A stretch of 64,000 bases of DNA, from contig JAIVFI010000013.1 of assembly GCA_025558095.1 (NCBI GenBank), positions 434,001-498,000 of the forward strand, written 5' to 3'. This document shows, piece after piece, positions 1,929 through 41,800 of the stretch (position 1 is its first letter; each line of letters starts with the position of its first letter). The notes beneath the pieces were generated by a model that did no database searches, was not told the DNA's origin, and saw only the letters and a list, made by a program, of their open reading frames with translations. Source of the DNA: Hyaloraphidium curvatum SAG 235-1 (lineage: Eukaryota > Fungi > Monoblepharomycota). Made by a program: the position numbers and the translations under genes.

Positions 1929-3645
1929 ATGCCCCTCGCCGAGCTCGGCAGGCTCGGCGGCAGCGTTGGCTACGACGTTGTTTACGGGGATGCCGGGCCC
2001 ATTGTTTCCTGGAGCTGTTTGTGGAGCCGGACGGTGGACCTCGCGGCGGCGGCGAGTCCGAGGCACTTCCTCGGCTTCGAGTGCCTGTTTGGCGGCAGGC
2101 GGCGCCGCATGCATCTCGCAAGGAACATATTCTCTAGGATTGCGCGGCTGGATCCGCCCTTGGAGGCCGCTGTACAGGGTTCGCTGCCGGCCCCCGCCGC
2201 GGCGCTGGTTGTCGGCCCCCACGCTCTCTGCTGGGCGAGGACTGGCCAGGAAATCAGGGGTAGCATCAAACATCCATGAGGTCTCTGTTTTCATGCATAA
2301 GCGGACGCCGACGTCCACCTTTCGGAGCGCTGCCAACGAGGCCAACGACGGCTTAACACGAGACCCGAATGGGCGCCGGGCGCGCACCGGGACAGGCGCT
2401 TGGGTTTCGGATGTGGACAAGATCCCGGAGCAGCTCTCCAGGAACTGGAGCAACTTCCCCGACGATACAATCGTCGCCGCCATCGACTACGGCTTCAACA
2501 ACGTCGTGACTTGCGGGCGCACAACGCTGGGCCAGATCAGGGCTGCGGAGAACATCTACGTCTACGACAAGAATCCCCTCGACAATCCTCTGCTGTATGA
2601 AGTGGAGGAGATCGTAGCGTGCGAAGTGGACGGCGTCGTCGTGGACCTCGACGGGAGGCCATTGCTCGAACTGTTCGGCGGCACGGTGGTCACCGACGAT
2701 CCGATGCCGCTGGTCGACGACGATCATGTGATGCGGGTCGACGGGGAGGACATCATGATGGAACCCGCCGATCGAACGTGGCTTGCCAGCGACGTAGCGG
2801 AGAAGCTGGTGGACGGCCGCAGGGTCTACGTCCGCAAGGTCAACAAGGGCGACGTGCGCCTCGACTTCTTCACCGTCACGGCTGCAAACGTGAAGAAGCA
2901 TACGGGTGCTGCGCGCCGCGAAAAGGAGACCGCGGAACGATTCGAACAGGTCTTTGGCTGCAAGGACCCGTTCGCCAGTCTTGGGTCTCCGCGCACGTGT
3001 GATGTTCCGAGGCTCAAGGCCTATCTGTGCACCTTGTTTGACAGGGCGGACAGAGTTTGGACAGTGACGCTTGGATCGGACATCGTCCGACTTCGCTTCC
3101 TGAGCTATATCGATAGCCAGCGGTTTTACGGGAACACGCTTGCAGCCTGGGTAGTGGGTGGAAAGGAAAACCTGAGCAAGTCGGTGTGGCTGTTCTCAGG
3201 TGCGGCGGGCCTCGTCTTCAAGAACCGCAAGGGGAACCAGCCGGTCTCCGTCCGGAAGTGCCGCAAAAGCCTATCCTTCGCCCTCAACCCCGGGATAGGG
3301 CAGTTCAACCTGGACACGGGCGGAGAGTACTCGTCTCAGGTCCATGCAGCGGCGCACTTGTGGGAGCACCCTGAGAGATCACTCGTCTGCATCAACCATG
3401 CGGAGGAAAGTCCGGACAAACGGCCACGCGGCCTCCAACGTTGCGAAGGAACAAGGTGTGGGTAACGGCTTGTGCTCTTGCTATTGTGCCAGCATGCGAG
3501 CTCATCATTGCTTGCAGACTCCTGTGGCGCGCACGTGGCTCGGGACAAGAACTCGGCGAAGGATGTCATGGGCATCGGGCTCAGCAACGTGGTATTCGGC
3601 ACGCGGCCTACGGTCTTTACCTATGAATTCTGGCGAAAGCGTTAA
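1929..3645 (+). CDS. Fanzor1/TnpB-like RuvC RNA-guided nuclease, probably degenerate (apparent frameshift near 2270, intron ~3458/3462-3517)
   Basis: RuvC-I IVAAIDYGFNNVVT (D 2485). Bridge region LRFLSYIDSQRFY and G..G..FKNRKGNQPVS. RuvC-II-like GGEYSSQV (E 3325). Zn-finger half LQRCEGTRCG. After the intron, RuvC-III ARDKNSAKDVMGIG...GTRPTVF (D 3544), which resembles the RDxNAA..I...GxRP..F end of Fanzor1. Confidence 0.75.
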
Positions 3646-3852
3646 AGGCAATCAAGGCGATCGACTTAGCGAGGATGAAGGCCCATCTGAGCCTACCATG
3701 CGAGGAAGCCGGCGGAGTTCTTTCCCCGGATTCGAGATAGACAGAAATGAAGAGTAGTAGTGATTTCCGTCATTCTAGCTAAGCAGAACAGACTGTCCGG
3801 ATTGTGTCCGGAGGCTTTGTGGCGCCGCTTACGTGGCGTTCGGCGCGACTAG
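3646..3852 (+). ncRNA. Candidate omegaRNA/fRNA scaffold region of the Fanzor
   Basis: Lies between the Fanzor stop and the element end. Complementary segments: CTTAGC(3665)/GCTAAG(3778), AGAAATGA/TCATTCT, TCCGGA-TTGTG-TCCGGA, GCGCCG/CGGCGC. Confidence 0.35.
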
Positions 3853-4329
3853 TCACAAAAGGGCAGCGGGTCCCTCTCATCACCAAACGTCTCCTGCCCC
3901 GTGCGCTCACCAGCATAGAGCCATGAGGGCCCGCAAGAAGCGCAAGAAATCTTCTCCCGTCGCGCTCTCCCCGTTGAGGGCGCTGTCCTGGTGAGCGGAG
4001 CCGCGGGGCCGGGCCCGGACGCCCACCTGACCTGCCCGTTGCCTTCCTCCCTTACACGACCCTTCGCCCTATTGCTCTGTCCCGGCAGCGCTGCACCGTC
4101 AAGCGCAGGAGCCGCATCCACGACGGCCATGCTCTCGGCTCACCGAGAGAGGTATGGATCTCGGAGGCGGCGCAACCCCTACAGCATGCTGATCTTCTCT
4201 CCTCGGCCTCCCGTGCGCTCAGCATTCATTTTCGCTTCTTTCTTTCTTTCGTTTTCCCGGGGATACATCAAGACCGAGCCGAGACGCGCGGGGGGGCCGC
4301 GCGCCGGGGGTTGAAGACCGCCGAACGCT

Positions 4330-4560
4330 TTCGAACTGGACTTCTCGTGCATCCTTTGCACCCCTCGGCGCAGCGCGCATCTGCCGCTTTGCAGCTCGAT
4401 CAAGGTCACCGAGACAACATGCTCAGCATCCCGACCCCGTGGGCCTCCAACGTTGCCATGAAACAACGTGTGGGTGATGGCCAATGGCTCGCGCGAGCTC
4501 GCGAACTCATCGTCCCCCTTGGCAGACTGCTGTGGAACCGTTGAAAACAGTAGCCAGAAA
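4330..4560 (+). pseudogene. Decayed second copy of the Fanzor C-terminal region
   Basis: 4432-4481 aligns with 3421-3469 (RPRGLQRCHETTCG vs RPRGLQRCEGTRCG, one indel). Intron in the same position (4474-4525), then LLWNR. Upstream FELD..SAHL corresponds to FNLD..AAHL. Confidence 0.7.
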
Positions 4561-5732
4561 ACTGGTAGCGGCGTGGAGGTCGACGTACTGATCTCGGATT
4601 GAGGTCCCTGGGAGTACGGATCTCCAATGTAGCCGCGCCATCGAACTTCGTTCTCCTACACCCTTTCGGAAACCAAGAACTTTGTCCGAGTCTTGTCTTT
4701 GATATTTGTGATGCTGCTAACGTACAACTCTACAGATGGATGATGGAAACGGAGATGGAGCCGCTGGTCAGCGCTTCCTCGTCTCGATCAGCCTTGCTAG
4801 GGCGATTTGTTGGCCCTGGGCGCGAATGGCAATACTCAACTTTGCTCCTATATGTCGAGGACACGAGGGTGCTGCCGCCACAGGTTTTGCGGTACGGAGT
4901 CGCGAGATCAGTCTGGTCGCACCCACTAGACCTTGAAATGACGTCCCACGCATGTAACGGTCCCTACCGCGCGTCGGAGCCACCTTGATCCGCATATCGA
5001 GCTTGATCTGGTGCCCTGTCAGCAGCGAAGGAGGTTGTGTGAGCATGTTTTTGGCCAGATCTTGTCCGACTAAGGCCTGGTCGGCCCCGTGACCGCGTTG
5101 GAACGCTCATTCAATTTCATCTTTCCGCTACTGCTTTCCCAGTGGTGATTCGCTGGCCAGCGCGACGTTGTCCGAGGAAATGGAGGCTGGCGAGCAGCTT
5201 TTCAAACCAAGCCCGTGATAGTGGCAGATCTAGTCCCCAGTGCGCCGCTGCCCCTCAGGCTGTTGACTCCGAGGTAAAAGTCCGCGCGAGAGGATAAGGC
5301 GGGGCATGGATACACGTGACTCGGCACGGTGCTCAAGGTGGTGCTTTGTGGCGATGCTTCGCCTCACTCTCCCTCCTCCTCGGCGCCTGCCTGGCGTTTG
5401 GAAATCTTCAGATCTTTGCAACGCAAGGCTGTAAGCAACGGAGGCGGTTGGGGAGAGCAGGAAGCGCCGGTCGCCCGACAGCTTGAGGTCCGCGTCGAGG
5501 CGACGTCCCAGCTGCCTCCTCTTCCTGCATCGCGCCTGCCTAGCGTTCTGGAGGTCTCGAAACCTCGTGATCTCTGATTATGAGCTTTGAGGAGGGGCTG
5601 AAGAGGACGGGGAGAGCCCGGAGAACGGTTTTGTTTGGTTATTAGTCAGAGTGGACAGTTTTTGCCTCCGACTACACCTTTCGATTCCGAAAGGTATATG
5701 CAAATCATCTGTCAGCAACTGGCGGATCCAGT

Positions 5733-19189: not shown

Positions 19190-20740
19190 ATGCTTCCCGC
19201 CCCGTCGCCCGCGAGGGCGGTGCTCGGTGCCCTGAGAAGACAGGTCCGGACCATCGCTCAAGTGGCTTGCCCACCGTTGACGCGTGTAGCAGCTCCCAGT
19301 CGCAGCCACCCTACAACGCGCACACGCCTCCTCGACTGTGAGCTCCCTATCCCCTGGTCCCGGGACGTGCGGCCCGTTGCTCAACTTCGCGACTGCCCCG
19401 TCGCACTTGCATCTGCTCCTTTCTGTCGCTTCGATGCCGCCGCCGCCAGGCGAAGCGCGTCGTGACGCTCATCCCGGGAGACGGCATAGGACCCGAGATT
19501 TCCAACGCGGTGAAGAGGATATACTCGGCTGCCCAAGTCCCGATCGAATGGGAAGAGACGGACGTCACGCCCATCATTCGCGACAATCAGACCGCGATCC
19601 CGGACGATGCCTATGTCTCCATCAACAAGAACAAGGTGGCCCTGAAGGGCCCGCTCGAGACCCCAGTCGGGAAAGGCCACCGGTCGCTCAATCTCACGCT
19701 TCGGCAGTGAGTCGCCACGGGCAGTGGCGTCGGGACCGAATGTCATTGACGCGGCGACAGGACGTTTGACCTCTACGCCAACGTCCGCCCTTGCAAGAGC
19801 ATAGACGGTTTCAAGACGCCGTTCGACAATGTCAACACCGTGCTGATTCGCGAGAACACGGAGGGCGAGTACAGCGGGATCGAGCACGAGGTAGGCATTC
19901 CGGCTGTGGGATGGAGATTTCCGGTTAAGTTCCTTCTGGCAGGTCGTTCCCGGGGTCATGCAGTCGATCAAGCTCATCACCCGAGAGGCTTCGATGCGCT
20001 GTATTCGATATGCCTTTGACTATGCCCGGAGCATAAAGCGGCCCAGCGTGAGCGTCGTGCACAAGGCGAATATCATGCGGCAATCGGACGGGCTGTTCCT
20101 GGAGTGTGCGAGGGAGATTGCGAAGGAGTATCCCGATATTACTTTCTACGACGAGCTTCTGGACCGTGTCTGCCTTCGGGTGTGTTGCAATGGACTTCGT
20201 GAGCGTGGGCACGGCTTACGCCCTCCCCAGATCGTGCAGGACCCGTCAAAGTTCTCGCACGTCGTCATGGTAATGCCGAACCTCTACGGCGACATCCTTT
20301 CCGACCTCTGTGCGGGTCTCATCGGGGGCCTGGGGTTGACGCCGTCGGGGAACATTGGCCAGAAGGCCTCCATCTTTGAAAGCGTGAGTGTCTCTGTGGG
20401 GGAAGTGTAGCGGGGCGGTCTCCGTAACTGCTCGTCGTAGGTACACGGGACGGCACCGGATATTGCTGGCCAAGACAAGGCCAACCCCACCGCGCTGCTG
20501 CTGTCGTCGGTGATGATGCTGAAGCACATGGGTCTGGAGTCCTACGGGGACCTGATTGAGAAGGCGACGTTGACTACCATTGCCGAGGGCAAGGTCGGTT
20601 GCCAGCCTCGCAAACTGATAGCACGGGGGTTCATCGCCATTATCCCGCAGGCTCGAACAGGGGATCTGGGCGGATACGCTCGCTGCTCGGAGTTCACGGA
20701 TGAGATCCTCCGCAATCTCGACAAACTCAGGGCCGCTTAG
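19190..20740 (+). CDS. IDH2: Mitochondrial NAD-dependent isocitrate dehydrogenase catalytic subunit
   Basis: Basic presequence. [71 protein letters not shown]. Confidence 0.95.
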
Positions 20741-20793
20741 GATGCTGAATGATGTGTGTTTTGTCTATCCGTCTACACGCAAATCCAACGGGT

Positions 20794-21852
20794 TCAAACC
20801 CTCGATTCGGTCTTGGAGAGCTTTTCGTCCTCGGACTCGATAGAGCGCACATACGTGTAGTACGAGCTCCCCCCAAGGATGAGCACGATGCCCACGATCC
20901 TCTGCGTGGTCACGACGTCGCCGAAGAACCACACGGCGAGGATCGTCTGCAGGACGCCTCGGATGGCCGAAGAGATCATGTGGGTCACGGGGGACGTGAC
21001 CTTGATCTGCAAGAATCCGGCCAGGTTTATCAGGAACCCGAACAGTCCGGTCACCAGGGTTCCCCAGACGAGCGTCCCCAGGCCCCCGCTGCCCAACATG
21101 TCCGAAAGGGCCGCAAACTCGGACCAGAGTCCCGAGATGAGCACGATCGGCACGAGCCCAACAGCGCTGAGCACGTTGTTGTAGAAGACCAAGTCGAGCG
21201 TGCTGTTGTTGACGACTTCGAGGCTCCGCGCGATGACGATGGCATGTAGCGCGGTCGTCACGCTTGAAAGGACGCCGAATGTCACACCCCAGAATGAGAC
21301 CTTTATCTCCTTGTCTTCCAGCAGCGTGCCGACGAGGAAGCCCACCACCACGATCCCGCAGGCCGAGAGGACGGCAACCGAAGACCTCTTCTTCAGCATG
21401 ATCCAGCTGAAGGTGACCGTGAGCGGCAGGATGAGCGAGCGCGCCACCTGGTACAGCGAAGCGTCCACAAAGTGGAGGCAGAGGGTGTTGAACGTCAGGC
21501 CGAAGCAGTTGATCAGGACCAGCGGCGCCAGGGCATAGGATATCTTCGGGTCCAGCTTCCGGGGCGTCTTCCAGACGCCCGACAAGTCGGAGGCATAGAT
21601 AAGGAAAACAGCCACGAGAATCTGAAGCCACAGGAAGAATATCGGCGCCGAGACCTGCAGGAGCACCCTCTTGTTGACCGTCACAAGGACGAGTGCCGTT
21701 GAGATATAGAAGGTCACCGCAAAGACTACAGTCTGGTGGAACGGCACTGTCGATTCCTGCAGTTGCTTGCCCATGTTGTCCCCGTCGTCCTCGGCGTCCG
21801 CCTTTGCGAGCGGAGCTGACTCGCCGTCGTCACCGCGGGCAGCGTCGCTCAT
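20794..21852 (-). CDS. Nucleotide-sugar transporter (SLC35C/GDP-fucose transporter-like, TPT family), intronless
   Basis: ~10 TM helices. FNTLCLHFVDASLYQVARSLILP, YNNVLS, QIKVTSPVTHMISSAIRGVLQT. Confidence 0.85.
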   Translation of the reverse strand: MSDAARGDDGESAPLAKADAEDDGDNMGKQLQESTVPFHQTVVFAVTFYISTALVLVTVNKRVLLQVSAPIFFLWLQILVAVFLIYASDLSGVWKTPRKLDPKISYALAPLVLINCFGLTFNTLCLHFVDASLYQVARSLILPLTVTFSWIMLKKRSSVAVLSACGIVVVGFLVGTLLEDKEIKVSFWGVTFGVLSSVTTALHAIVIARSLEVVNNSTLDLVFYNNVLSAVGLVPIVLISGLWSEFAALSDMLGSGGLGTLVWGTLVTGLFGFLINLAGFLQIKVTSPVTHMISSAIRGVLQTILAVWFFGDVVTTQRIVGIVLILGGSSYYTYVRSIESEDEKLSKTESRV

Positions 21853-22043
21853 ATGGCGACGGCAACCATCGGCGTCCCGTGGTCCGTGGCTCGCTCTATA
21901 GCGGGATGCCGGCCGGCTCGGTGTGTCCTCGTTGGGGTTCTCAATCCTACAGCGCGCGCGCCCTGCATGGTTGCAACCCCTCGATCATCCAGCCGCAGCA
22001 GACACGCCTCCCTGAAGGCCCAACGCCTCTCACCGCGTACAGC

Positions 22044-22880
22044 ATGGCATCCGATGCAACGAGCAACGATGCATCCGACGCGAGCGCGCTGTTCCCACTG
22101 CCGAGCTCGATGACCACGGCCGATGCTCTCAAGATCGTTGCTCAAGAACGCGGCTGGACAGCCGAGGAGATGGCCTCGGACCTTCAGGTGCTCCACCGGG
22201 AGAGGCTCAGGACCATCGGAGACTGCAGGTGCGTGGTTCTGCCGCGCATGTCGACGGCGGCCCGGGGTTGACGTGTGATTCGCACCAAACGCGTCTCGCG
22301 ACGCGTTCCGCCGCGGCTTCCAACAGGTCACTCGGAAAAGACAGCTGGAAGGAGATCAAAGACGTGCCTTTGATCGTCCGAGAGTGAGATTGGATGCTGC
22401 GGCGTTCGAGACTGCGCGGGCCAGCTGACGAGTTCCCCCAGCAATCTGCGACGCCTTGCCTGGGCGGAAGTCGCGGCCGCCGGACCCAAGGGTGAAGTCA
22501 TTTCGAAGAAGCAGTACAAGCAGATGGAAGCGGAGTTCCGCAAGAAGGTCGAGGAAGCCCAGCAGCACGCGGACGCCACGGGTGCAGAGGTCGAGGTGGA
22601 GAACCCGATGCGGGCGGGCTTGCTGTCTTCCCTCGGGACTTTCACCGGTGTGCCTACGCTCGTACGTGGACGCAAGCCGCCGCCGCCACCTGCTGTCCCG
22701 CCGCCTCCTCCCGGACCTCCGGGCCCGTACTACCCCTACCCGGCGCCCCCCCCCGGGGTGGCGCCTCCTTCTCCTCCGCCAGTTGCTGCAACTGCCACAC
22801 CTGCAGCGTCACTCGCGGCTGGAGACGATGAGGCGGTCGTGGTTGGAAAAATTGAAGACTTGCAGTTCGGCAAGAAATGA
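22044..22880 (+). CDS. Hypothetical protein with proline-rich C-terminus, multi-exon
   Basis: Coding-like exons (MASDATS...LHRERLRTIGDCR; ...MEAEFRKKVEE...PPPP...KIEDLQFGKK*) joined by GT-AG introns. Family not recognised. Confidence 0.6.
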
Positions 22881-22919
22881 GCCTACGTGTGTCGTGTATT
22901 GATGGTATCACATTTGTGT

Positions 22920-25438
22920 TCATCTCTTCTGCTTCTTCCCCTTGGGCTGGGAGCGAAAGACAAAGTTGGGGAAGCCTTTGGAAGCTTGGGTTGACACCTC
23001 GTCCAGCATGTCCATCATGCATTCCTGCGGACCGCACGATCGGCTTTAGCAGCAGCCAGATCAGAGTCGCGTGCAGGCGAACCCACCTCCGCTTCCCGTT
23101 CTGCGAGCCTCTCGCACATGGGCCGCCACCGGACCCCGCTCTCGTCCAGATCCTGGGGAGGGAACGCAAAGTCCGGCCCAAAGTTCAGTTTCACCGATCC
23201 CCCACTAAAGAGGCTGACCGTGGGATAGTACCCGATCGTCCCGTCGTCCGCCACCGGAGGCTCGGGCAGGAAAGACTCGAGCGGCTTCCGGTGGTCCTCC
23301 GGGACCGCCGCAGCGGCCGGGATCGGCGCGGCAATGTCCTGAAAGGCGGTCCCTTGCGACACGCCGTTCTTGTAAAAGGTGATGTAGGAGCCGCGCAGGG
23401 TGGGAAAGTCCTTGGAAAGGAGCGACGCGTACCACGGGAGGGTCCGCTGGGTGATCGGCGTCGAGTGCGACTTCAGCGTCGCTGCCTTGTTGGACATCAT
23501 CATCCAGGTCAGCAAAGGAGGGATGTTGATGGGCTGATAGTCCCTGGACTCGAGGAAAAGGCCGCCGCGGAACCTGATGGCCGGCCGGTGGCGCTTGCTC
23601 TTGAACATGGAGACGGACTCCGGCGGCATTTTTGACAGATCGTGGATGAGCTGCGGCCTCTCATCCGATCCGGTGCCCTCTCCGTCGTTCTCCTCCTTGG
23701 GTGCAGGCTCCCTCGGAACCACGTTGCCGGCCATCGGGGGCAGGGAGATGAAGCAGCCGATCACGTCGCCGGATCCGAACGCGTCGGCGTACTTGACCGG
23801 CTGCGACTCGTGCAGCTTCTCCCCCGTGGAATCGCGGTAGCCGTATCCGTACGAGTCGTAGCCGATCGGAGCCCCCAGGGTTGCCTCGCGGCGCGACCAG
23901 CCCAGCCGCACATTGGCACCCGTGCGGCCCTCGTTGTCCGTCCGTCCTTCCGAGCCGCCCTTCAGAACGTGCACTTCAAAGTACCAGTTCCCCTCTGCAG
24001 AGGGCGTAGCGTGAGCATTGGGGAAGCAAAGCAGAGCAGGCACGCAACGTACCCTTGACGCCAACGTTGGACCGCACGCTGCGGAAGCCCGCCTTGTTCG
24101 TCGCGGTCACTCCGTCGTTCAGTACCTCAATCTGAGCGCTCCGATCCGTAGGGCTGAGGAATACGGGGGATCCACCCGCGCGGGACCGGAAGTACTGCTG
24201 CGGCCGGAAGTGGGTGTCCCGGAAGACGCCAGCAGGATTGGATTCGCCGAACTCGTACTGACGAGGTGGTGAGCTGGAACTCCCCCAGGCGTAGCACTTG
24301 CAGCCGTTGCCCACCTTGTAGCCGTCCTTGTTCCAAGGGTGCTCGACGTCCCAGTTGTCCGGCGGGATAAAAGCCCTCTGCGTCTCCTCCACCGTCTTGA
24401 GCGATCTCGAACGGTCTCCGGCGGCGGCGGGCTCAAAGAGCGCCATGGCTTCTAGATCAGCCGCTGCCGCCTCGTCGACGTCCCGCTCCAAACGGCGCTT
24501 CTTGTCTGCCGTCTTTTTGGTCCGCGTCGGCTCCGACGGGGCATCCTGCAGCTCGACGGCCTTGTTCGAACTCTGGAGCTCCTAAACCGCGCGTGAGCCG
24601 AAAATGAACTCATCACTGATGAGCACCGGGCAAAGATCACCTGTATCAGCCCGGGCCTGAGGTTGTAGAGGTTCTTCTCGCAGAGGGTAAAGGGCGACGA
24701 GGCGGAACGGCTCTTCTCGTCGAAAGGAGCAAAGAGGCTGGTGTTTGAGTACAAGCAGCTGCCGACCACAACCCAGGCGTTGGCCGATCGCTCGCTTGAA
24801 GAGAAGAGACGAAAGGTCGGCCCAGCGGCGATGGAACGGGGGGACCCGACCCACCGGTTGCGGCACAGAGACCGCCAGTTCTTGTCGATGAAAGGGCAGA
24901 TGTGTTCGTTCTTCTTGAAGTAGTAGGTCGGATCGTCTCCCGGGATCGTGGCATCGTGCATGGATCGCTTCGCGTCCTGCATCTTCTTCAGGGCCAGGCA
25001 CGCGATGGCCGTGACCACGGATTCCTCCCACGAGCCCGCGGTGCGCTCGAAGCGCTCCTCGCCCGGCCAGTCGCCTTCGTCGTCGGCCATGCCCTTTTCT
25101 GCGCGTACGCACAGCGCGCACGTGAAGTTGTAGTCCATCATGAACGTGATGAGGCCCTCGGCCCTAACGGGGGCGGACAGGCAGCTGGCGTGGAACCAGT
25201 TCCGGCACTTGCGGCACTGCAGGTTGACCTCGTTCAAGTTCCTGTCGCCGCCGCAGTAGCAGTAAAGGCCCTCGAGGTTCTGGGTGTGGTTGAGAATCCA
25301 GTGCCTCGCCTCGGGTTCGTACGGCAGCCCGCGGTCCCCGGGGCGCGGCGCCGGCCGCAGCGGCGACGGGCCGGCGCTGAAGTGCCCGTGCGACGCGTGC
25401 GGCGGCGGGCCCCTGCGCGGCGGCGTCGCCAGCGCCAT
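22920..25438 (-). CDS. ASH2: Set1C/COMPASS subunit Ash2/Bre2 (PHD-like + winged helix + SPRY)
   Basis: YCYCGGDRNL...QCRKCRNWFHASC, ICPFIDKNW. SPRY: GFRSVRSNVGV-EGNWYFEV...RLGWSRREATLGAPIGYD...GYYPTVSLF...NFGPDF. C-terminal Sdc1-binding helix. Confidence 0.92.
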
Positions 25439-25562
25439 CTCTGATCTGTTGATGCTTGGGGTCGCCAGTCCCGCTAGCAATTTCTTTGTGATCGACGCCT
25501 CCCCCCAAAATCTCTAAGCCCATTCCCGAGCCCCGAGGAGCGGCGGGGCGCGGCAGCCTCCA

Positions 25563-27135
25563 ATGGCGGCGGTCGAGGCGCGCACGCCGCCTGCGGGCGA
25601 GGGGCGGCCGCCCGAGCCGCGCAAGCGGCCGCCGTCGCCGACGCCGTTCCGCGCGCAGTCGCCGGCGGGCTTCGCGGGCTTCGAGCCGCCGAAGGACAAG
25701 CCGGACCGCAAGAAGACGAAGCGCGCGAAGCCGCACTCGCGCGCAAACAAGCAGCCCGGCGCGCGCGGCCGCCGCCGCTCCGTCGACGACGATGCCCCGC
25801 CGTTGTTGGTCCGCACCGCCCCCGCACCGCCGCCCGCGCCGCAGGGCCGGCTGGGCAAGTCGCTGTTCCAGGACTTCGAGCGCACGCTGCAGGACATCGG
25901 CAAGCTGCTGAAGCGCACCGTGCCCGCGAACCTGCGCACGGAGGACGGCGAGGACGGCGGGGACAACGAAAACGCAGACAGGGATCAGAGGTGGGCGGCT
26001 GCGGCCCGGGCCGTGCGTGCCGGCGGTCTGACTCGTAATTCTGCCTAGGGGCTCCGACAGCGAGGCTCCGTCGCGCCCACAGACCCCCGAGGACCCCGCC
26101 CAGGAATCCAGCGACCCGCTGGCGGAGTCCTTCCAGCGCCTCGACCTTGCTTCCCACGACGAAGAGCCGCGTGCGCCCGAAGTCGTCGAGATCCGCGCGC
26201 TCGACGGCGACGCTGCGGCGGACGTTGGCGGAACCGACGGGGAGGACGTTTTGGCCGGCCCAGCGGCCGCGCCTGCACCCGAGGACGCGGCAGCGTTGGA
26301 TGCCGTGGAAGCGGCGGACCTGGTGGAGTTCGAAAGCTCGCGACGGCGGGTGCGCTTCCACTCGGAGGAGCTTTCCATCGTGCTCGCTTTCCACGCTGCT
26401 GCGCCCCCGGTGGCGCTCTACGACTCGGGGGCCGCATGCCTTGCTTTTCCCGATCCGGGTGACCGCTACTTCGAACTGGAGCGCGAGAGGGAGCGGGAGC
26501 GGGAGGAGGAGGAGCGCAAGTTTGTCCACGGCGTCGTGGTGCACGGCTGGACTCCGTACCCCGCGTACGCGGGCGACGAGCCGTCCACGCTGCGCGTCGA
26601 GGACGTGCGGCTCCGAGCCCGCACCACCGTCGGCGTGACCATCGCCGTGCGCAATCTTGCCTTCAACAAGCGCGTGGTGGTCAGGTTCACGCTGGACCGG
26701 TGGCACTCTTTCCAGGAGGTGGAGGCCAAGTTCGTGACCAAGCTGAACCCCAACGACGATTCCTGGGATCGCTTCCTGGCCGAAATCGAGGTGCCGTCCG
26801 ACATTTTCCGGCGCGATCCGACGGTTTCCGCCGAGCTGGAGGAGCACGAGGACGGCGAGGAGGACCCCGTGCGCGGGACTGCGGGGGGACGAATGTTCTT
26901 CGCCATCAAGTTCCTGTGTCCGGGGGCGGGCGAGTGGTGGGACAACAACCGGGGCCGCAATTTTGAGGTCGAGTTCCGTCGTCGCAGGCGGCAGAACGCC
27001 GCGTGGGAGGGAGAGGCTGTGTTCCGGAACATGCGGCGCAAGGACATCAGGAGGACCGAGAGGACCCGCAGAAAGCAGGAAGAGTGGGACAAGCACTTTC
27101 CGAACGTCGCCGACTCCAGGATAAAGAGGTCTTGA
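25563..27135 (+). CDS. CBM21-domain PP1 glycogen-targeting regulatory subunit-like protein
   Basis: RVxF motif RRRVRFHS. CBM21 IAVRNLAFNKRVVVRFTLDRW...FAIKF...EWWDNNRGRNF. Confidence 0.85.
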
Positions 27136-27310
27136 TGCCGCGTGGGTCGCGCGGTGGGGGGCAAAGGTTGACAGTTTCTTTCGAAATGGACACGTGGGCA
27201 ACTGGACGTAGTGGAGATGATTGGTTTTGCTGGCATCCGTTTGGACCTTCGCGCACGTCATACCCCGAATCGATGTGTAGCTCATGGTTTTTTGGCAATG
27301 CATTTCACGT

Positions 27311-28465
27311 TCACTTCTTTTTCGCCGCGCCCCTGCTCCTCGACCTCGAGTAGCTTCTCGAAGACCGGCTCCGCGACCTCGAGTACGACCGGCTCCTGGA
27401 GCGCCTTTAGAAAAGTTCCCCGGGCGTGCGTTGCGAAACGCTCACCTCGATCGGCTGCGAGACGAGAAGCTCCGGCTGCGGCTCCGACCCCGACCTTTCC
27501 GCGGGGGAGAGCGGCTGCGGCTTGCGCTACGACTGCGCGAGGAGTAGGAGCGGGACCTCGACCGTCCCTTCCGCGGAGCCGGAGACCTCGATCGTCCCTT
27601 CCGCGGGGCGGGCGACCGACTCCTGCTCCGTGACGACCGACCCTTCCGTGGCGCCGGCGCCGGCCTCTTGTCCCTCCCGGAATCTCGGTAGGAGGTCGCA
27701 GCGCCGCGGTTCCACCGATCCCTCGACAGGGAACGTTTCCTGGCGTCCCGGCTGCCAGCCCTGTCGCGGCTGTCGTACGTCGGCCGGTAGCTGTACCGCG
27801 AGTTGGGCGGTGGTGTGCGACCGCGCCGCCTTGCATCCCTGGCGTCCACCTCGTCTCTGTATCCGCGCCCTGCCCGAGCCGGCTCGGCGGGTGGCCGCGG
27901 CTGGACATAGGCGCACGAGACGACGTTTCCGTCAATCTGGGCCCCATCCATGTGCGCAATGGCGGCTTCTGCTTCGTCCTGGGTCGAATACGTGATGAAG
28001 GCGAACCCCTTGTTGGCATCGACTGCCCGGACGGCCTGGTGAGGCGTTTGCGGGCGCACGGAAGCGTCCAAGGTCTCACTTTGCCGGTTCATCGGCACCG
28101 CGACCTCCTTGACCGTGCCGTAGTTTCCGAATATCTCCCGCACATGTCCCTCGTTGACGTTCCGCGTCAACTTTTGCACAATGATCTTTGTCTTGGCGGC
28201 GCCCTCCCCCTCCGGTCTCCGGCTCGGCGCAGCTCGACCGCGGCTCGAGCGCGAGCTCTGGGACATCGGAGACCTGCTCCGAGGCGACCTCGAGCGCGAC
28301 CGGGAGTAGGACCTGACGATGCGGCGTTCAGAGCGGGGAGACGCGGTTCTCGGGCGGGAGCGCTAACCGGCTACGCGACCTCGAGCTCGCTGACCTGCTG
28401 CGGCTGGAATCCGGCGACCGCCGTCGCGACCGCGACCGGCTTCTGTTTTCTTTTTCCACGTCCAT
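27311..28465 (-). CDS. RNPS1: RNA-binding protein with serine-rich domain 1 (RRM + RS repeats)
   Basis: KIIVQKLTRNVNEGHVREIFGNYG...NKGFAFITY...AIAHMDGAQIDG flanked by RS-rich tracts. Confidence 0.88.
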
Positions 28466-28638
28466 CGGAAGACTCGTGGGGGGAAAGACCGAACGACTTT
28501 GCTGCGCGGCGCGACTCCCGAGGCGGTCACGCTCATCACAGGCTCAAGAAGGGGAGGCTGCGGGAAAGGCAACATGCCATGTATCCACGACAAAGAAAGA
28601 CAAATCCAAGGGTATCAACATGCCCAATCTACGTGGCG

Positions 28639-33963
<5,325 letters not shown>

Positions 33964-34103
33964 CGCGGGAACGGGTGTCTGCGCGACCTGGCGAGTGATG
34001 GTGAGCTCACGGGTGCCTCCTTCACCCCGGACGCCTGCGTACGGAAAGGAAAAGAGAGCAGCAGATCCTAGGCAATCTATCGCAACTGCATCACAACTCA
34101 TAT

Positions 34104-35316
34104 TCACATTCCTCCGCGCGTGACCATAGCGCCCTCCTTCTTGGGCATTTGCCTCGTCGGGGTCTGGATAGCCGAGACCCAGCTGAAGGTGGACGCATCA
34201 GCACCATCCAAGCGACCTGAGCAGCGACAACTCACGTGACCCCGTACCACATGATGAGGATCACGGGGATCATGGCAAAGATGGCCTGGAACATGCCGGT
34301 GTTCAGGACCCAGTACTTCTGGAAGAACGGCCGGTCGTTAAAGGCGACGTCGCCCCACGGACCGGTGTAGTTTGCGGGCAGCTGACGCTTGGTGAGCTGC
34401 GGGAATCTTCAGAAACGCGCCGCTGCCGCGACGACGTGCGCTCCCACCACCCGGGCACTGATCTTGCTCGTGTAGATGACGGTCCACTTGTCGCCGGCAA
34501 TCTTGCGCGCGCTGTCCACGAGCTCGCTGAGCTTGTTGTCGTTGGTGGTGAAGTCGTCCACGGGGAGCGCGGGGAGCGTGACGGGGACGACGGACATGCC
34601 GGCCTCGCCCTTCCGGACCTCGCCATCTGCCAGGAAGCGATTAGCCATCGCCGGCTGCCCTGGTCTACACCCAACGCCACATACCGGTGAAGAACTGCGC
34701 GTTGGGGCACATGCCCGAGATCGTCTGCAAGACCGCGTCATAGTTCGAAGTGTGGGCACCGTCGATGGTGCCAAAGTAGGGGATCGTGATGGAGTACTGC
34801 GCCTCGTCCATCGACCGCTTCACGAACGACCCGGTGATGTGCTTCTTCACGGTGGCGAAGTGCACCTGGACGGATTCGGGGTCAGGCAGCGACGAGGCAT
34901 TGGCACGAAGGCAAGCTCACCCCGGGTTGGTCAATGACGAGGGTCACGCCCTCGCAGTCCCCGACGAAAGGCTTCAGCGTCGATGCCAACGACGACTCGT
35001 CGACGAACGCGACGGCTGGGATGTCGGGGTGCGCCCTGGAACCGCGCGATGCCGGTGAGCCCGCGCTCTCCACGCTCCGCCGACGCCACACCCCGCCCGT
35101 GCGCCCTCCAATGCCTCTTCTCCATGTACGGGCGTTGGCCGGGCCCCATCGCCGGGAAGGAGGAGGTCTGCGCCGCCTGGAAGCTCCAGATGTCCGCCCG
35201 CGCCATCGCCCTCACCTCTTCCCGGACCACACCATGAGGGGCGCGGTGTTCTGGAACGCCACGGCGGAAGACGCCGCGCTCACGAGGAGGAGCACAGTAA
35301 TTGACGAACCACGCAT
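34104..35316 (-). CDS. V-ATPase assembly/accessory protein (Voa1/Ac45-like), type I membrane protein
   Basis: Signal peptide followed by NTAPLMVWS. C-terminal PFFQKYWVLNTGMFQAIF-TM-WVSAIQTP pattern. Confidence 0.6.
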
Positions 35317-35545
35317 CGTGGAGGCGAAGGTGGGAGCAGGAGGTGGCGCCGGACTTGATGCTAGCCCGCGATCGCTGATAGGCCTGCAAGCCTCTAACTT
35401 GCACTGGTACACCTCACCACTTCATCCACAAGGCACCCCAACGATCGCAGCAGTCGTAGAACTGGTTTCCAACTGGAGTTGAAGTTATTGGGGGGGTAGG
35501 GAGTCTGGTCTCTGAACAGTAGACGCCCGGCGACGCCGCATTTCT

Positions 35546-37307
35546 TCAAAAGAATACAGGGCGCGTTGATTTCTTCTGCGAGAGCGCCACGTTCCTCGAC
35601 TCGAAGAATTCCTTAACGTCCGCCTCCTTGATCACCCTCCCGCGCTTCGCATACTCGCGCAGGAACTCCGACAGCTCGTCCCGCACCTGGTTGTACACGT
35701 TGACGGCCTCGATCGCTTTGTTGCGCGGCATGCGGTTTAGCTGTTTGAGCGCGAGGTCGTCGGGCGAATCGGTCGCCTCCTCGTCCAGGGGCGGCTCGTA
35801 GAGCTCCTCCGGCTCGTGGAGGAAGACCAGATCGCGGACGTAGTACATGTCGAGGCACTCCTTGCATGCGCAGAGGGCGTCGCGCCATCCGCCTGCGATC
35901 GCGCTCAGCGATGCCGCCGAAGGGATGCCCACGCGACCCACTTGTGCCATAAAGGTCCAGCTCTCCCACATCGGCGTCCGGAAGCTGCTTCAATGTGCAA
36001 ACGCGCGGCCCTTCGCCCTTCTGGGGCGAGCCCGACTGGTCCCCTTTCCGCGGTGACGATCGCGCGGACAGCAATCTCGGCTTCTTTGCCGTTCCGCTCG
36101 GGCCGGGATCGGATCCCAGCTCGTCATCCAGCGGTCTTTTGCCCGCCTGAACGTCCGGTTTCGCTTCGACGACGGGCCTGGCGAAGAATGCCGCGGATGC
36201 GCTGTAGCGCTTGAGGAAAGGGTGCTTCTCCGTGCTGTGGGAGGGGGCGTTGAGCTGCAGTGCTTATGGCGAGCGAGCATTCCCACCAGCGCCGGCAGAA
36301 AAAGTCCTCGTACTCGCTTTGCTCGGGAATCTGGGGTCATCGAGTCAGCGACGGTCACCAAAAGCCCATGAGGAAACTGACCCCGCCGAGACAGCGATCG
36401 TGGTACCAATCTGACCCAGCAAACACGAGCAGACAGACCATCCCGATCGAGTCTTGCGTTAGGACCAAGTCCGCGAGAGGTGGCCAATCCAAGCGCACCT
36501 TCGCATACGAGGCACTGCAGCATGTCGTCGCTTTCCGGCACGTACGCCTTGCCGCAGAGGCAGTACCTGTCCTCGAAGTTCGGGCCGTAGCTGTTCTCCG
36601 GGTTGATCTCCGCGTCCCGGTCCTTGGCCTGCAGTGTGCACGGGGCTGCGGTGCGGGACGCTCAGCGAGGGCCGCGATCCGCGCCCGGACAACCTACACG
36701 GGAAGCGGTGGCCCCCGCAGTCGCAGCGGAAGTGCCTCCGGGCCTGAAGTTCGATCAGATCGTGGTCCGTGTGGCACTGCGACGCAGTCAGCCGATTTAC
36801 AACGCTGGCCCGCGCTTCCACCAACCGAAATGGAGCACGAGTAGCAGATTCCGGCCGGGCTGGTCCCGTCCTTGGCGCAGGTTTGGCAGACGTAGATGTT
36901 TTGCCTCACGTATCCTGTCACGGACGTCGGGACGTCAGGACGGCGCGCGGGCCTGCAGCTAGGGCGCCGACCTTGGTCGAAGCTGCACTCGTCAAACTTC
37001 CGGGGCAGCGCCTCCGCAGCTTCCTGTAAAGCCGAATTCCGACCAGCATTGCAGGTTTATCGCCCGAGGGCCCGCCGTCCGACAGTCAACCACAGGCGTC
37101 GAGGGTGCGCGACGGCTCCACCTTGTACAGCTCGTCCTCCGCCTCGACCCACTCCTGCAGCGTCAGCTCCTCCTCTTCCTCGGCATGGGTCCCGAGCTCG
37201 GAGGTCGGAACGGCGCTCTCGGGCTCCGCGGCGGAACTCGGGACGCCCGTCTCGGCAGCCGTCGGGGCGGGCTCGCCGGCCTCCGCGCCGGGCGGGATTC
37301 CCATCAT
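35546..37307 (-). CDS. UBR7: UBR7-like E3 ligase (UBR zinc finger + PHD)
   Basis: GYVRQNIYVCQTC...GICYSCSI-CHTDHDLIELQARRHFRCDCG. N.YGPNF..RYCLCG..Y...MLQCLVCEDWYH. WRDALCACKEC. Confidence 0.9.
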
Positions 37308-37499
37308 GTCGGGAAATGCAGCGGAGGGATGGGCTCCGCGGGATTGCGGCGGCGGCTCCGGAACGGCCGGGAGAGTTGGGGCCGTCGACGATTCGGATTC
37401 GAAGGAGTTCTGTCGGACGCGACTCCTCAATCATCAGGACCCCTTCGGACGCCTTCACCTCCCTCGATCCATTGCCAATAAGGCGCCAAGCAGTGTAGA

Positions 37500-38719
37500 T
37501 CACGCCCTGAACACCTGCACGATCCTCTCCACCTCCGTCCTGCAGATCGGACACGACCGCACCCCTTCCTCTGCTGCCTCCTCCTCCCAGTACGCCTCGG
37601 CGTGCGGCTGGCCGTGCATCCGCGCCTCCGTCTCCCGCAGCCGCCGACCGCGGTGATCAGGGCGCGGGCCGGGCTGCCGCCGCGAGGGGGCGAGGCGCGA
37701 GGCGCAGGGCATGCAGACGGAGAGGTGTCCGCTGTGGACGGGCGGCAGGGTAAGTAGAATGTGGGAAGCAGGCGCGGTACCACGAACCAGGGGATGATAA
37801 CGGCGTCCACGGAGCGGGAGAAGCAGATCCGGCAGTCCTTGGAGGCCCGTTCGCCCTCCCCCTTTTCCCTGGGTTCGCCCTCCTCCTCCTCCAAGCGATC
37901 AGCGCCGCCCGCCGCAGGCTCCTCGGCGCGGACAACGGGCTCGCGCTCCCGGCCGGCGGCACCGACGATCCACGACACGATCGACTCGGGCGTCCACTCG
38001 TCGAGCCAGCTCCCCGCCCCGTTCCCATCGTCCCCGTCCCCGCCTTCAGGTCGCCGATCGCGCCGTGCCCTCCAATACCGCAGCCTCCTCTCCTCCTCCC
38101 TCCGCCTGCGCAGCACCCCCGCCAGCCGCACGATCTTGCCCGCCTCGTCCTCGCCCGTGCCCAGCTGCACCAGAAGCGCGACGATTTCGGCCTCCTTGCG
38201 CTCCGCCGCGGCGAGCTCCGCGTCGTCGGGCATGCACGCGCGGCAGTCGGTCCATTCGGGAGAGTGCGGGCAGAACCATTCCTTGTACGGAATCTCGACG
38301 GGCAGGTTCGCGTGGGGATTCCATAAGCGCGCCGGGTCCGAGAGGTCCTCCTCGTCCCGGTTCCGCTGTGCCAGGAAGCTCCGGATGAACATCTGCGTAA
38401 TGGGCGATTGACCCGGGATCGTTTCGGGGTCGAGCGGCACGTAGGAGGCGGTGGGGACATCGGGCACGAAGCCCAGGCGGTCCTTGCAGGCTCCGCAGTA
38501 CCACTCCTCCCTGGCAGCCACCGGCAGGAACCCGTGCCCGTCCACGTATTTGAGGTAGGAGCCCCGCTTGCGCACGTCGGGGGGCAGGGCGGCCTCCGAC
38601 GCGGAGCGCAGCACCTCGCGCCTGTCGAGGCACGGGCAGCAGCTGGGCTGCGTCAGCGAGCAGGGCCCATGGCCGCAGGGCTTTTGGAGGCCGCCGTGCG
38701 CGTGCCCGCTGGCCGACAT
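37500..38719 (-). CDS. C-terminal RING-finger (C3HC4_3/IAP-type) protein with Cys/His-rich N-terminus
   Basis: CRICFSRSVDAVIIPC-GHLSVCMPCA...SCPICRTEVERIVQVFRA*. N-terminal C..H..C...CC.C cluster. Confidence 0.75.
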
Positions 38720-38819
38720 CTCTCCGTGCGGGTTGGGAGCGGGAGCCGCCAGCGGGGCGTTGTTGACTTGTCGTTTCGTCGCCTCTTCTTGTCACTTCCT
38801 CCCCGCCCCCTCTCCTCCA

Positions 38820-41800
38820 ATGGCGTACGCGGGCGGCTTCGACTGGGGTGCGTGTGCCCTGCGAGAATGAAGGCAGCAGCTGACCGCGGGTTGTCGCAGG
38901 CCGCGTCGGCGGGCCGCAGCAGGGCGACCGGCGCGACGGCGGGCTCCGCGACGGGCCGCGCGACGGCGGGCAGTGGCGCGGCGGGCGCGGGCGCGGGCGC
39001 GGCGGGCACGGAGGGCGCCACGACGCGCCGCTGGACCCGCGCGCTGAGGCCGAGGCGCGGCTGCGCGACCTGGTCGTCGGCCTCGCGGACCGCCCCGCCG
39101 ACGCAGACAAGCAGCTGCGCAACCTGGCAAACATCCTGTACAGGGACTACGCCGCTCACGCGCAGGTCATGCTGGCCGCGTTCCGCGCCGCGATCGCCGG
39201 GCTGCCGCACAAGGCCGCCTTCTACGCCGTGCTGGTCGGCCTGGTCGCCGCGGAGGAGGCGGCGGCCGCTGGCGGCCCGCCAGCAGTCGACGGCTTTTTG
39301 CGCACCGCGATGCAGGCCCTGGACGAGGCGCTGAGGGGCTGCGAGTGGTGGGAGGTCATGAGCCTGGTAGGCGCCTCCGTCCCCCCGCTCCCCGCCCTCC
39401 TCCTGACCCGCATCCCAGCTCCGCTTCTTTTGCGAGCTCGTCAACGCGGGCGTCGTCGCCCCCGCGTCGCACCTAGCCCTGCTGCGCACCCTGGCGGGGC
39501 CGCTGGCCACGCACCCGACCGGCTCCTCCTTCCCCGACTCGTTCTGCTACATCCTCCTAGATACCCTCCCCCACGCCGCCAAGGCGCTGTGGTCTGCGCT
39601 GCCCGACGAGGCAGAGGCGCTGTACGGCGACCTGGCGGCCTACGTCGAGAAGCGCGCGCCGGAGATGGCGCGCAATGCCGCCAGCCTGGTCTATTTCCGA
39701 GGCTCGGCGACGGGGCTGGACGCGCTGGGCGAGCTGTTTTCGGCCGTGAGGGGCTGCAAGGAGGCCGGCTGGGAGGTGCGTCGACTTGCGGCGTCCCGTC
39801 TTGCTTTTCGAGGCTCACCGCTCTCGTGCAGCTTCCGTTCTTGTCCACGATTCGTGATCGGCAGCCCAAGCTGCGGACGGTGGTCCCGCGGGAGCTGCCC
39901 GGAACCGTCTCCCTGCCTTCTGACAACCCGGACCTGCGGTTTCCCCTCGTGGGCGGCCCGCTGCTGTTCATTTTTGACGATGCTTCGCGGAACGCCGAGG
40001 TTGGTTCGGCGTCCCATCTCGCCGACGCCCGGGATTGACCTTTTCGGGGTATGGCAGCCCGTCATCCACCACCTGCCCTCCACCTCGTCCTTCGACCGGC
40101 ATTACCTCCGCATGCTCGCCCTCCTCCTGCTGCGCCTCTCCATCGAGAACCGCAAGCCCGCCGTGCAGGCCTTCCTCTCCCTCCCCGACCACTTCCCCGC
40201 CCTGCCCGAAAACAATTTCATGGCCTACGAGGCCGTGGTGGAGACCATCGTCGCCGACGTGCAGCGGCTCCCGAACCCGCTCGACTCGGCGCCGCTGTAC
40301 CAGAACTCGGTCATGTGCGACTTCCTCGGGGCCAACCCCAAGGACATCGCGCCGCTGCTGGGGCGCTGCGTGAGGCGGTGGTTCGACCGGATCGACAACG
40401 AGGAGTGCGACGTCGGGTGCGTCAAGCGGACGGCGGAGTACCTCGCCGTGCACCTGAGCAACTTTGGCTGGAAGTGGAGCTGGGACCGCTGGTGGGTTGA
40501 TCCGGCACATTGGGCTCGCCCCGCGCTCATTCGTACTCCCCGCCAGGCTGCCGGCGCTCTCGCTGGACAAGCACACCGCCCGCCACGCCTTCCTCCGCCA
40601 CTTCCTCTCCCAGATGATCCGCCTCTCTTATTGGGAGCACACCCAGGAGGCCCTCCCGCGCTCCTGGCACCCCTCCATGCCCCCGCCGACGGGGACCGAC
40701 TTCCGGTACGCCCCCGAGTCGGGCGCGGACCCCGCCGTGGTCGGCCTTGCCGCCGAGATCGTCGCCGCGGTCCGCTCCCGCAAGGAGGGCTGGCTGGACG
40801 AGGCCCGCGCGGCCGTGGAGCGGCTCCGCGCCTGGGCGCGCGAGAACCCCGCCGCCGCCGCCGCGGCCGTCGGCAAGCCCGGCGACGCCCCCGCCGAGGC
40901 CGAGGACGCGCTGGCGCGGGACGTGGTGATGCAGGCGCTCATGGTCGTCGGCTCCAAGTCCTTCTCGCACGTGCTGGCGGCCATGGAGCGCTCGCTCCCG
41001 CTGCTGAGGGACATGTTCCCCAGCCACCGGTACTCGGCGGACCCGGCGGCGTGGAAGGCCATGCGGCAGGCGCTGCGCGCCGTGTGGGACTTCAACGCGA
41101 GGGCCAACACGCAGTTCCTCGAGATCGTGGTGGACAAGCTGCTCAACTACCGGGTGCTCGACGCGCCGAGCGTGTTCGAGTGGATCATGGACCGCGCGGT
41201 GGAGGACGACATGTATTCCGAGTGGGTCTCTTGCTGTGGCGCGGGGCCTGGATCGATCGCTGACAACCGTACAGGTTCTGGCTCTGGAACATCATGCTCA
41301 GCACGCTCTCCAAGGTCGTGCTCCGCGTCAAGCAGCTCACGGTCCGCGTCGAGGCCGCGCGCAAGGCGCTGGCCGCGCTGCCGCCGCCCAAGTTCGTCCC
41401 GGTCGACTCGGACAACATGGAGAGCGAGGCGCCGGCGGACGAAGAGTACCGCAAGGCGCAGGAGGAGCTCGAGCGCGTGGGCAACCTGCTCAGCGGGGCG
41501 CAGAGGGACGAGAAGGAGAGCTTCGGCACCGTGTTCAAGGTTTGGCCTCCCGTACCCATGCCGATCCGCCGATGTCCAACATCCGCTCCGCAGAAATTCG
41601 TGGCCATGCTCAAGGCGCACATCGAGGCTTCGACCGCGGCGGGGCAGGACCCGGAGCAGGCGCCCTTCTGGCGGTACGCCTCCGGGTTCATGCGGGAGAT
41701 TGGGCGCAGCGTGGGTCCTACCGGCGATCGACGTCCGCATTCCGCCTGACGCATCCCCATTCCGCCTGACGCATCCCATTTGCATCCAGTACGCGGACGC

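Follow-up and report, generated by a model that had tools for sequence, protein, structure and literature searches.

A transcribed and spliced, probably defunct Fanzor1 fragment in the monoblepharid fungus Hyaloraphidium curvatum

The segment from 2255 to 3645 of the window, the 64,000-nt stretch of the Hyaloraphidium curvatum genome analysed here (positions 434001-498000 of contig C13, in an assembly of 31.9 Mb and 55 contigs), is very probably a relic of a Fanzor1 gene: transcribed, spliced, truncated at its 5' end and catalytically compromised. Both the front half of the protein and an essential catalytic residue have been lost, and it is for this reason that we regard the locus as the remains of a transposon and not as a working enzyme. 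The copy belongs to a family of inverted-repeat DNA transposons of H. curvatum resembling SPu-1, and it encodes only the C-terminal RuvC/TNB half, the WED/REC half that binds the TAM and the guide-target duplex having disappeared.

The relic is flanked by host genes on either side. Upstream, and divergent from it, a minus-strand gene (1166-1891) carries a PF05047 (mitochondrial-ribosomal L51/S25/CI-B8) domain; a GMP synthase gene starts near 5.9 kb of the window. The window ORF at 2293-3465, which opens with the first in-frame Met (2293), is 99% identical to the NCBI hypothetical protein DFJ74DRAFT_69501 (P0001, 531 aa), and this public model supplied the spliced protein used here. The original prediction had placed the gene at 1929-3645. 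That interval holds from 2255-2269 onward; its first part, 1929-2254, has no Fanzor homology and no similarity to any paralogue. It is a spurious upstream extension of the ORF in GC-rich intergenic DNA, and probably the 5' UTR of the relic transcript. Similarly, residues 1-101 of P0001 have no homologue and correspond to the intergenic DNA that adjoins the 5' end of the divergent host gene. Long spurious ORFs are frequent in this genome of ~60% GC. What the 531-aa public model describes is a truncated relic to which a spurious N-terminal stretch has been added, and the window copy as such has annotation value only.

Attempts to identify the protein directly were unproductive. Pfam recognized no family in the window ORFs or in P0001, even at an E-value of 10; phmmer with the window protein against the PDB sequences gave no match; a word-based protein search with the same query returned only itself; and a profile made from the lineage alone (A4) matched no solved structure in the PDB. 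A profile of the C-terminal halves of the paralogues (A1) found a single weak match in the PDB, the mimivirus Fanzor2 L79 (E 0.019). Because these direct searches failed, the link to the solved Fanzor1 structures had to be made through intermediate metagenomic sequences and structure prediction. When compared with 1.84 billion representative proteins, A1 found 40: the H. curvatum models P0002 and P0004, their close metagenomic relatives P0003 and P0005, and about 35 other metagenomic proteins of 180-800 aa (E 4e-14 to 9e-4). The Cas12f1-like TNB domain PF07282 is present in 18 of the 21 full-length matches. A profile (A3) was built from an alignment of 18 full-length A1 matches that contains no Hyaloraphidium row. 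It matches SpuFz1 over the whole length (E 9.1e-52), as well as GtFz1 (E 3.1e-41) and PpFz1 (E 7.4e-40), with the mimivirus Fanzor2 reaching only 8.8e-9. The same profile matches the six-frame translation of the window directly (E 7.6e-16), and hhalign aligns the window family (A1) with it over 219 columns at a probability of 99.9% (E 8.5e-32). When the window protein is placed in the first row, a profile built from C-terminal halves reaches SpuFz1 with an E-value of 4.6e-37.

Structure prediction leads to the same relatives. The AlphaFold (AF2) model of residues 102-531 of P0001 (pLDDT 77, pTM 0.70) has SpuFz1 as its best Foldseek match (E 2.8e-6). In the VIA comparison SpuFz1 scored a Z of 16.3 (rmsd 4.0 over 259 residues, model positions 27-425 against chain positions 357-633), followed by PpFz1 (14.2), CasPhi (13.3), Fanzor2 (11.9), Cas12f (11.3) and ISDra2 TnpB (10.5). 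The model of the full-length paralogue on contig C37 (pLDDT 65.7, pTM 0.65) matches SpuFz1, GtFz1 and PpFz1 over the full length (E 1e-12, TMt 0.62). The similarity of the window copy to Fanzor1 is far beyond chance, and both the profiles and the predicted RuvC/TNB fold support its placement in Fanzor1 and not in Fanzor2/TnpB. The original prediction of a divergent Fanzor1 lineage is borne out by the A3 match, the hhalign probability and the first place of SpuFz1 in the structure searches; in the profile and structure comparison with SpuFz1 and TnpB that it had suggested, both similarities were found, the one to SpuFz1 being the stronger (Z 16.3 vs 10.5). The divergence of the lineage is also real, with Pfam blank on the window protein and no solved structure matched by the lineage-only profile.

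Exon 1 (2255-3457, plus strand, as are all features of the copy) has 68% amino acid identity to the C37 copy and an hhalign probability of 99.9% against the Fanzor1 alignment. It encodes the last WED strand, RuvC-I, an acidic insertion, a helical part, the rearranged RuvC-II and the first half of the TNB zinc finger. In RuvC-I (AIDYG, 2479-2493) the Asp codon (2485-2487) has been kept, and in the alignments of relatives it falls in the column of the invariant DPG-motif D. The canonical RuvC-II position is occupied by Gly (SGAAG, codon 3199-3201), as in 36 of the 38 rows of our alignment, making this a Fanzor-type rearranged site. Further downstream are GGEYSSQ (3319-3339), VHAAAH (3340-3357) and, at 3442, the C-EGTR that supplies the first Cys of the second zinc-finger pair. 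Inside that pair lies a 60-nt GT..AG intron (3458-3517). Exon 2 (3518-3645) contributes the second Cys (3523-3525), the RuvC-III Arg-Asp (3541-3546), the C-terminal helix and the stop codon (3643-3645); RDKNSA begins at 3541 and ...GTRPTVF... follows up to the stop. The R and D columns of RuvC-III are nearly invariant in the 38-row alignment, and exon 2 agrees with the RuvC-III motif of mimivirus Fanzor2 L79. The RuvC-I (AIDYG), RuvC-II-like (GEYSSQ) and RuvC-III (RDKNSA...GTRPTVF) motifs of the original prediction could all be located in the sequence. Its CxxxxCG motif survives only in part: the Cys pair exists, but the spacing came from reading through the splice donor, and the spliced protein has C-x6-CG with the second Cys in exon 2.

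The intron, which had been proposed from the sequence although the ORF track misses it, is confirmed by RNA. An RNA-derived contig of run X1 joins 3457 to 3518, and P0001 uses the same splice (...CEGTR-Y-SCGAHVARD...). Moreover, the C45 paralogue, which has no intron, is colinear with the spliced product of the window copy. Two X1 contigs, 2109-3298 and 3269-3787, have no mismatches to the window. The depth of the relic RNA is comparable to that of the neighbouring host genes, contig depth being a poor measure, and transcription probably starts in the intergenic region that the relic has in common with the divergent upstream host gene. A freshwater polyA metatranscriptome (run X2) contains a contig of 257 nt that matches 2147-2402, the 5' part of the relic transcript, without a mismatch, which suggests that both the organism and the relic transcript were present in an environmental sample.

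The acidic insertion was predicted to be of about 100 residues, rich in Val and placed right after RuvC-I; we find it there as 88 aa (2584-2847), with 24% Asp/Glu, 18% Val and a net charge of -12. It expands the β2-β3 hairpin of the RuvC fold, and AlphaFold models it as β-hairpins around a low-confidence core. Only the window and C37 copies have it; C45, P0003, P0005 and all other relatives lack it. Large RuvC insertions have been noted in Fanzor1 (PMC10711439), and that of PpFz1, ~100 aa, forms the FRI domain (PMC11423790). Homology between the two insertions was considered and rejected: that of PpFz1 follows the long helices and falls between positions 126 and 143 of the profile, whereas that of H. 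curvatum is in the β2-β3 hairpin. With such different sites, the two insertions must be independent.

The prediction that His replaces the first Cys pair of the zinc finger also agrees with the alignment, in which the first Cys column holds 32 Cys and 3 His and the second 29 Cys and 2 Ala, and the window copy has His and Ala (VHAAAH). This first CxxC pair has been lost in the whole sub-lineage of the window copy, and half lost in the C45/P0003 group, so that its loss is a trait of the lineage and not decay of this particular copy. The motif of Bao & Jurka for the family is D-X(125,275)-[TS][TS]-X-X-[C4 zinc finger]-X(5,50)-RD (PMC3627910). In the window copy the D...SS spacing is 281 residues, which the insertion brings slightly above the range of 125-275; after SS-x-x there is His in the place of the first Cys, the second Cys column has Ala, and the second Cys pair and the RD are both present. 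The lineage illustrates what the fold tolerates: an 88-aa insertion in a RuvC hairpin, the loss of half of the zinc-finger Cys residues and an intact member of 969 aa.

One sign that the window copy is a relic is at its 5' end. Its similarity to Fanzor begins at ~2255-2269, inside the last WED strand, where the window reads ...HEVSVFMHKR and C37 ...SDVSIQLHKR, and some 530 N-terminal residues (WED/REC) are missing. The WED/REC domains, with the TDG motif and REC2, are missing from the window copy; the C37 paralogue has them. Its N-terminal ORF of 589 aa found no match on contig C13, the relatives of this ORF being on C31 and C39. In the VIA alignment the window product corresponds to SpuFz1 residues 357-633, leaving no equivalent of residues 1-356. 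In the solved Fanzor1 complexes it is this WED/REC half that reads the TAM and holds the guide and the heteroduplex (PMC10432273; PMC11423790).

The second lesion is in the active site. The RuvC-II of Fanzors is rearranged: the canonical site is occupied by an inert Gly or Pro, and the essential Glu is an alternative one some 45 residues downstream (PMC10530073). In SpuFz1 this Glu, E541, coordinates Mg together with D383 and D606 (PMC10432273), and mutation of its equivalent in ApmFNuc abolishes cleavage (PMC10530073). In the 430-aa window product the canonical-site Gly is G303 and the alternative-Glu column is 41 residues further on. In our 38-row alignment this column holds Glu in 36 of 37 rows, and Gly (codon 3322-3324, equivalent to SpuFz1 E541) only in the window copy. 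The original prediction had taken the Glu to be shifted by one residue, but the conserved column argues instead for a substitution. Relatives have GEEYTSQ (C37), GEEYSSQ (C1) and GEDYSSQ (C45); since they read GEE or GED, the window's GGEYSSQ represents a change of Glu to Gly beside a Glu that was already there. The same Gly codon is carried by the X1 RNA contig, which covers 3269-3457 without mismatch. Of the catalytic triad the window copy thus retains both Asp residues and lacks the Glu; in C37, C1 and C45 the triad is complete.

Substitution patterns, obtained by comparing the exons separately and then summing only the counts, tell of two periods. Between the window copy and its closest relative, C1, there are seven coding differences, all seven non-synonymous and none synonymous, which is consistent with relaxed constraint, although by itself this count is not significant (P ~0.15). 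Against the C37 copy, an older divergence, dN/dS is 0.26 and dS 0.83, a ratio that we read from the sequences as the signature of the lineage's functional past.

The suggestion that intact copies might exist elsewhere in the genome was well founded, as the paralogue search uncovered one apparently intact copy of the same lineage. This is the full-length 969-aa paralogue on contig C37 (P0002), 68% identical to the window copy. The others are incomplete: C1 has a 3' fragment (86% amino acid and 94% DNA identity to the window); the C45 paralogue (36-48% identity) is frameshifted and has neither the insertion nor the intron; C31 and C39 carry N-terminal halves. The C37 gene belongs to an element of ~5.3 kb (~C37:274861-280150) with ends formed by imperfect inverted repeats of ~30 nt sharing ...AGAAACCCGCACTC. 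The Fanzor stop codon is separated from the 3' end by 67 nt, and no transposase domain was detected in the ORFs of the 1.9 kb that lie ahead of the gene, downstream of the 5' repeat. The family, with an RNA-confirmed intron in the window copy, thus resides in multi-copy inverted-repeat elements.

A Fanzor1 copy that lacks the insertion is divided between two contigs, C31 with the N-terminal half and C45 with the C-terminal half; an identical 477-nt LTR abuts both halves (L011:2722-3198 and L008:7428-7904), and a Ty3-like pol ORF adjoins the one on C45. Either a very recent retroelement insertion combined with rearrangement has produced this arrangement, or the assembly was joined through the repeat. 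The genome also has several further Fanzor1 families of a more canonical kind, with E-values of 1e-53 to 1e-63 against a Fanzor1 profile and open frames of 666-1230 aa (C14:723260-725265, C31:258238-260106, C2:358037-359914, C1:1444950-1446818, C2:416056-417920, C34:484816-486048 and C7:693722-695590), along with many short families. Some fragment families are multi-copy, one of them having 12 loci and a frame of 199 aa. H. curvatum is, in short, rich in Fanzor1.

Directly after the stop codon of the window copy there is neither a recognisable transposon end nor an omegaRNA module. Beginning 145 nt after the stop, and outside the gene, there is an ORF-less module on the plus strand (3791-4640). 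At ~4330-4580 it retains the decayed 3' end of a second Fanzor; a candidate omegaRNA-like structure occupies its terminus (4563-4640), and its 3' inverted repeat is at ~4612-4640. The module is one of at least nine copies in the genome (the window module, L013-L019 and L003) of an ORF-less, or "ghost", element of ~1 kb, the sub-groups of which are 97-98% identical. These elements have inverted repeats of ~30 nt, TA flanks in most copies, and a 3' part that holds a decayed zinc-finger/intron/RuvC-III remnant. They match the C37 element over its 5' 130 nt and its last ~370 nt. The 94% identity between C13 and C1 extends from 3266 exactly to the 3' repeat of the ghost module, which implies that in this sub-lineage gene and module moved, or were duplicated, as one unit. 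The terminal ~78 nt (window 4563-4640, L002:2831-2908 and the 3' ends of L013-L019) have a conserved fold, with 96.5% paired cells and compensatory changes in 3 of 16 pairs, to which only three independent sub-lineages contribute. This is suggestive of an omegaRNA-like structure, without being proof of one.

In run X1 the RNA over ~3890-4690 (plus strand) is very abundant, at a contig depth of ~20,000-40,000 compared with ~800 for neighbouring genes. It has introns at ~3989-4088 and ~4150-4220 and reads through the 3' repeat at 4640. It looks non-coding, since indels among the copies break any reading frame; possibly, it is an omegaRNA precursor transcribed from a strong promoter within the ghost element. 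Some 50-100 nt upstream of the start of this transcript, at 3796-3860 and in the same region of L013-L019, there are tandem units of ~13-16 nt (CTTACGTGGCGCCGC-like), one to four per copy. A Helitron-type terminus at ~3850 was considered and rejected: the homology among ghost copies continues through the tandem units, which must therefore lie inside the element, and the termini of the elements are the inverted repeats at 4640.

How firmly can the window copy be called a relic? Several observations count against this reading. Its frame is open for 390 codons and its intron is correctly spliced, which means that the decay is slight; the count of seven to none is not significant by itself; the RNA depth, for what contig depth is worth, is like that of the host genes nearby; and a Glu, a possible rescue, stands one residue after the lost one. 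Such a Glu, together with the preserved RuvC-I and RuvC-III Asp residues, could be taken as the sign of a working RNA-guided nuclease in which the neighbouring residue substitutes and the missing domains are dispensable or supplied in trans. This we consider highly improbable: adjacent residues of a β-strand face opposite sides, the equivalent of SpuFz1 1-356, which in the solved complexes recognises the TAM and holds guide and heteroduplex, is lacking, and the stop is not directly followed by a recognisable transposon end or omegaRNA module. Lacking both the WED/REC half and the essential Glu, the window copy is very unlikely to be such an enzyme, and its product is most likely non-functional, with nuclease loss deduced from the sequence. 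It is equally hard to credit that the protein is of TnpB/Fanzor2 type, some other Cas12-like RuvC protein or a set of chance motif matches. The blank Pfam result and the weak, solitary match of the lineage profile to Fanzor2 L79 would fit this, but the intermediate-sequence and profile-profile scores are far better for Fanzor1 than for Fanzor2/TnpB, SpuFz1 (Z 16.3) stands above Fanzor2 (11.9) and TnpB (10.5) in the structural comparison, and the match of the full-length paralogue to Fanzor1 extends from end to end.

A different objection is that the fragment may have been exapted, as an expressed, nuclease-dead RuvC/TNB-only protein with a new role such as, by analogy, that of a regulator or decoy of the ghost omegaRNA-like transcripts. 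Nuclease-dead TnpB derivatives have reportedly been domesticated as RNA-guided transcription factors. The gene is transcribed and correctly spliced, its ORF is intact over 430 codons, and a very abundant ghost-derived RNA is made next door; the fragment has also kept the RuvC/TNB surface, to which most of the omegaRNA binding is directed in Fanzor1 structures (PMC11423790). Nevertheless, we think exaptation unlikely. The fragment is a single copy with no evidence of an orthologue, all of its changes since the last duplication are non-synonymous and half of the zinc finger is gone. Furthermore, long spurious ORFs are common in a 60% GC genome and the adjacent divergent host promoter can explain the transcription. 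The more specific proposal that a nuclease-dead, omegaRNA-binding fragment modulates a live Fanzor1 system, composed of the C37 protein and the ORF-less elements providing guides in trans, seems to us, if anything, a little less likely again; were it true, the fragment would be a eukaryotic counterpart of TnpB domestication. We thus favour a truncated and catalytically compromised relic. The intact C37 protein, by analogy with SpuFz1, may bind an omegaRNA derived from the last ~80-95 nt of its element, and the complex would cut DNA matching the flanking guide, as has been shown for SpuFz1. For the mining of new Fanzor editors, the parts worth testing are the intact gene on C37 and the abundant RNAs of the ghost elements. 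No paper in the literature searched linked Hyaloraphidium with Fanzor or TnpB, and the present analysis adds a divergent Fanzor1 lineage from a monoblepharid fungus.

Among the known systems, SpuFz1 and its element SPu-1 of Spizellomyces punctatus (PDB 8GKH, 9CEU-9CEZ) are the closest match in both sequence profile and structure, even if identity to SpuFz1 is only ~15%. As in SpuFz1, the RuvC-II of the family is rearranged, with Gly at the canonical site and the Glu in a D-E-x-x-T-S motif. SPu-1 is 2.1 kb long, with 30-33-nt repeats, putative TA duplications and Fanzor as its only gene (PMC3627910; PMC10432273); the H. curvatum element similarly has Fanzor as its sole gene, inverted repeats of ~30 nt, TA-like flanks and an ORF that ends shortly before the 3' repeat. 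The terminal structure of ~78 nt in the ghost and C37 elements is close in size to the 75-nt omegaRNA scaffold of SpuFz1. Both genomes contain many ORF-less ghosts and copies disrupted by Ty3/Gypsy elements (PMC3627910; PMC10432273), and the H. curvatum ORF-less elements correspond to the "ghost" Spu-1 elements described by Saito et al. There are differences as well. Unlike SpuFz1, the window copy has no equivalent of residues 1-356 or of E541, and its lineage has the 88-aa RuvC hairpin insertion, an intron and no first TNB Cys pair. The intact paralogue is also larger, 969 aa as opposed to 633-638 aa, within an element of 5.3 kb instead of 2.1 kb. PpFz1 of Parasitella parasitica (VIA Z 14.2) is likewise a Fanzor1 with a RuvC insertion of ~100 aa, at a different site. 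Finally, Fanzor2 and TnpB (mimivirus L79, ISDra2 TnpB) have the same RuvC/TNB core fold and RuvC-III motif, but the resemblance is much weaker (Fanzor2 profile E 9e-9; Z 11.9 for Fanzor2 and 10.5 for TnpB) and they do not have the Fanzor1-type REC/WED architecture that the full-length paralogue displays.
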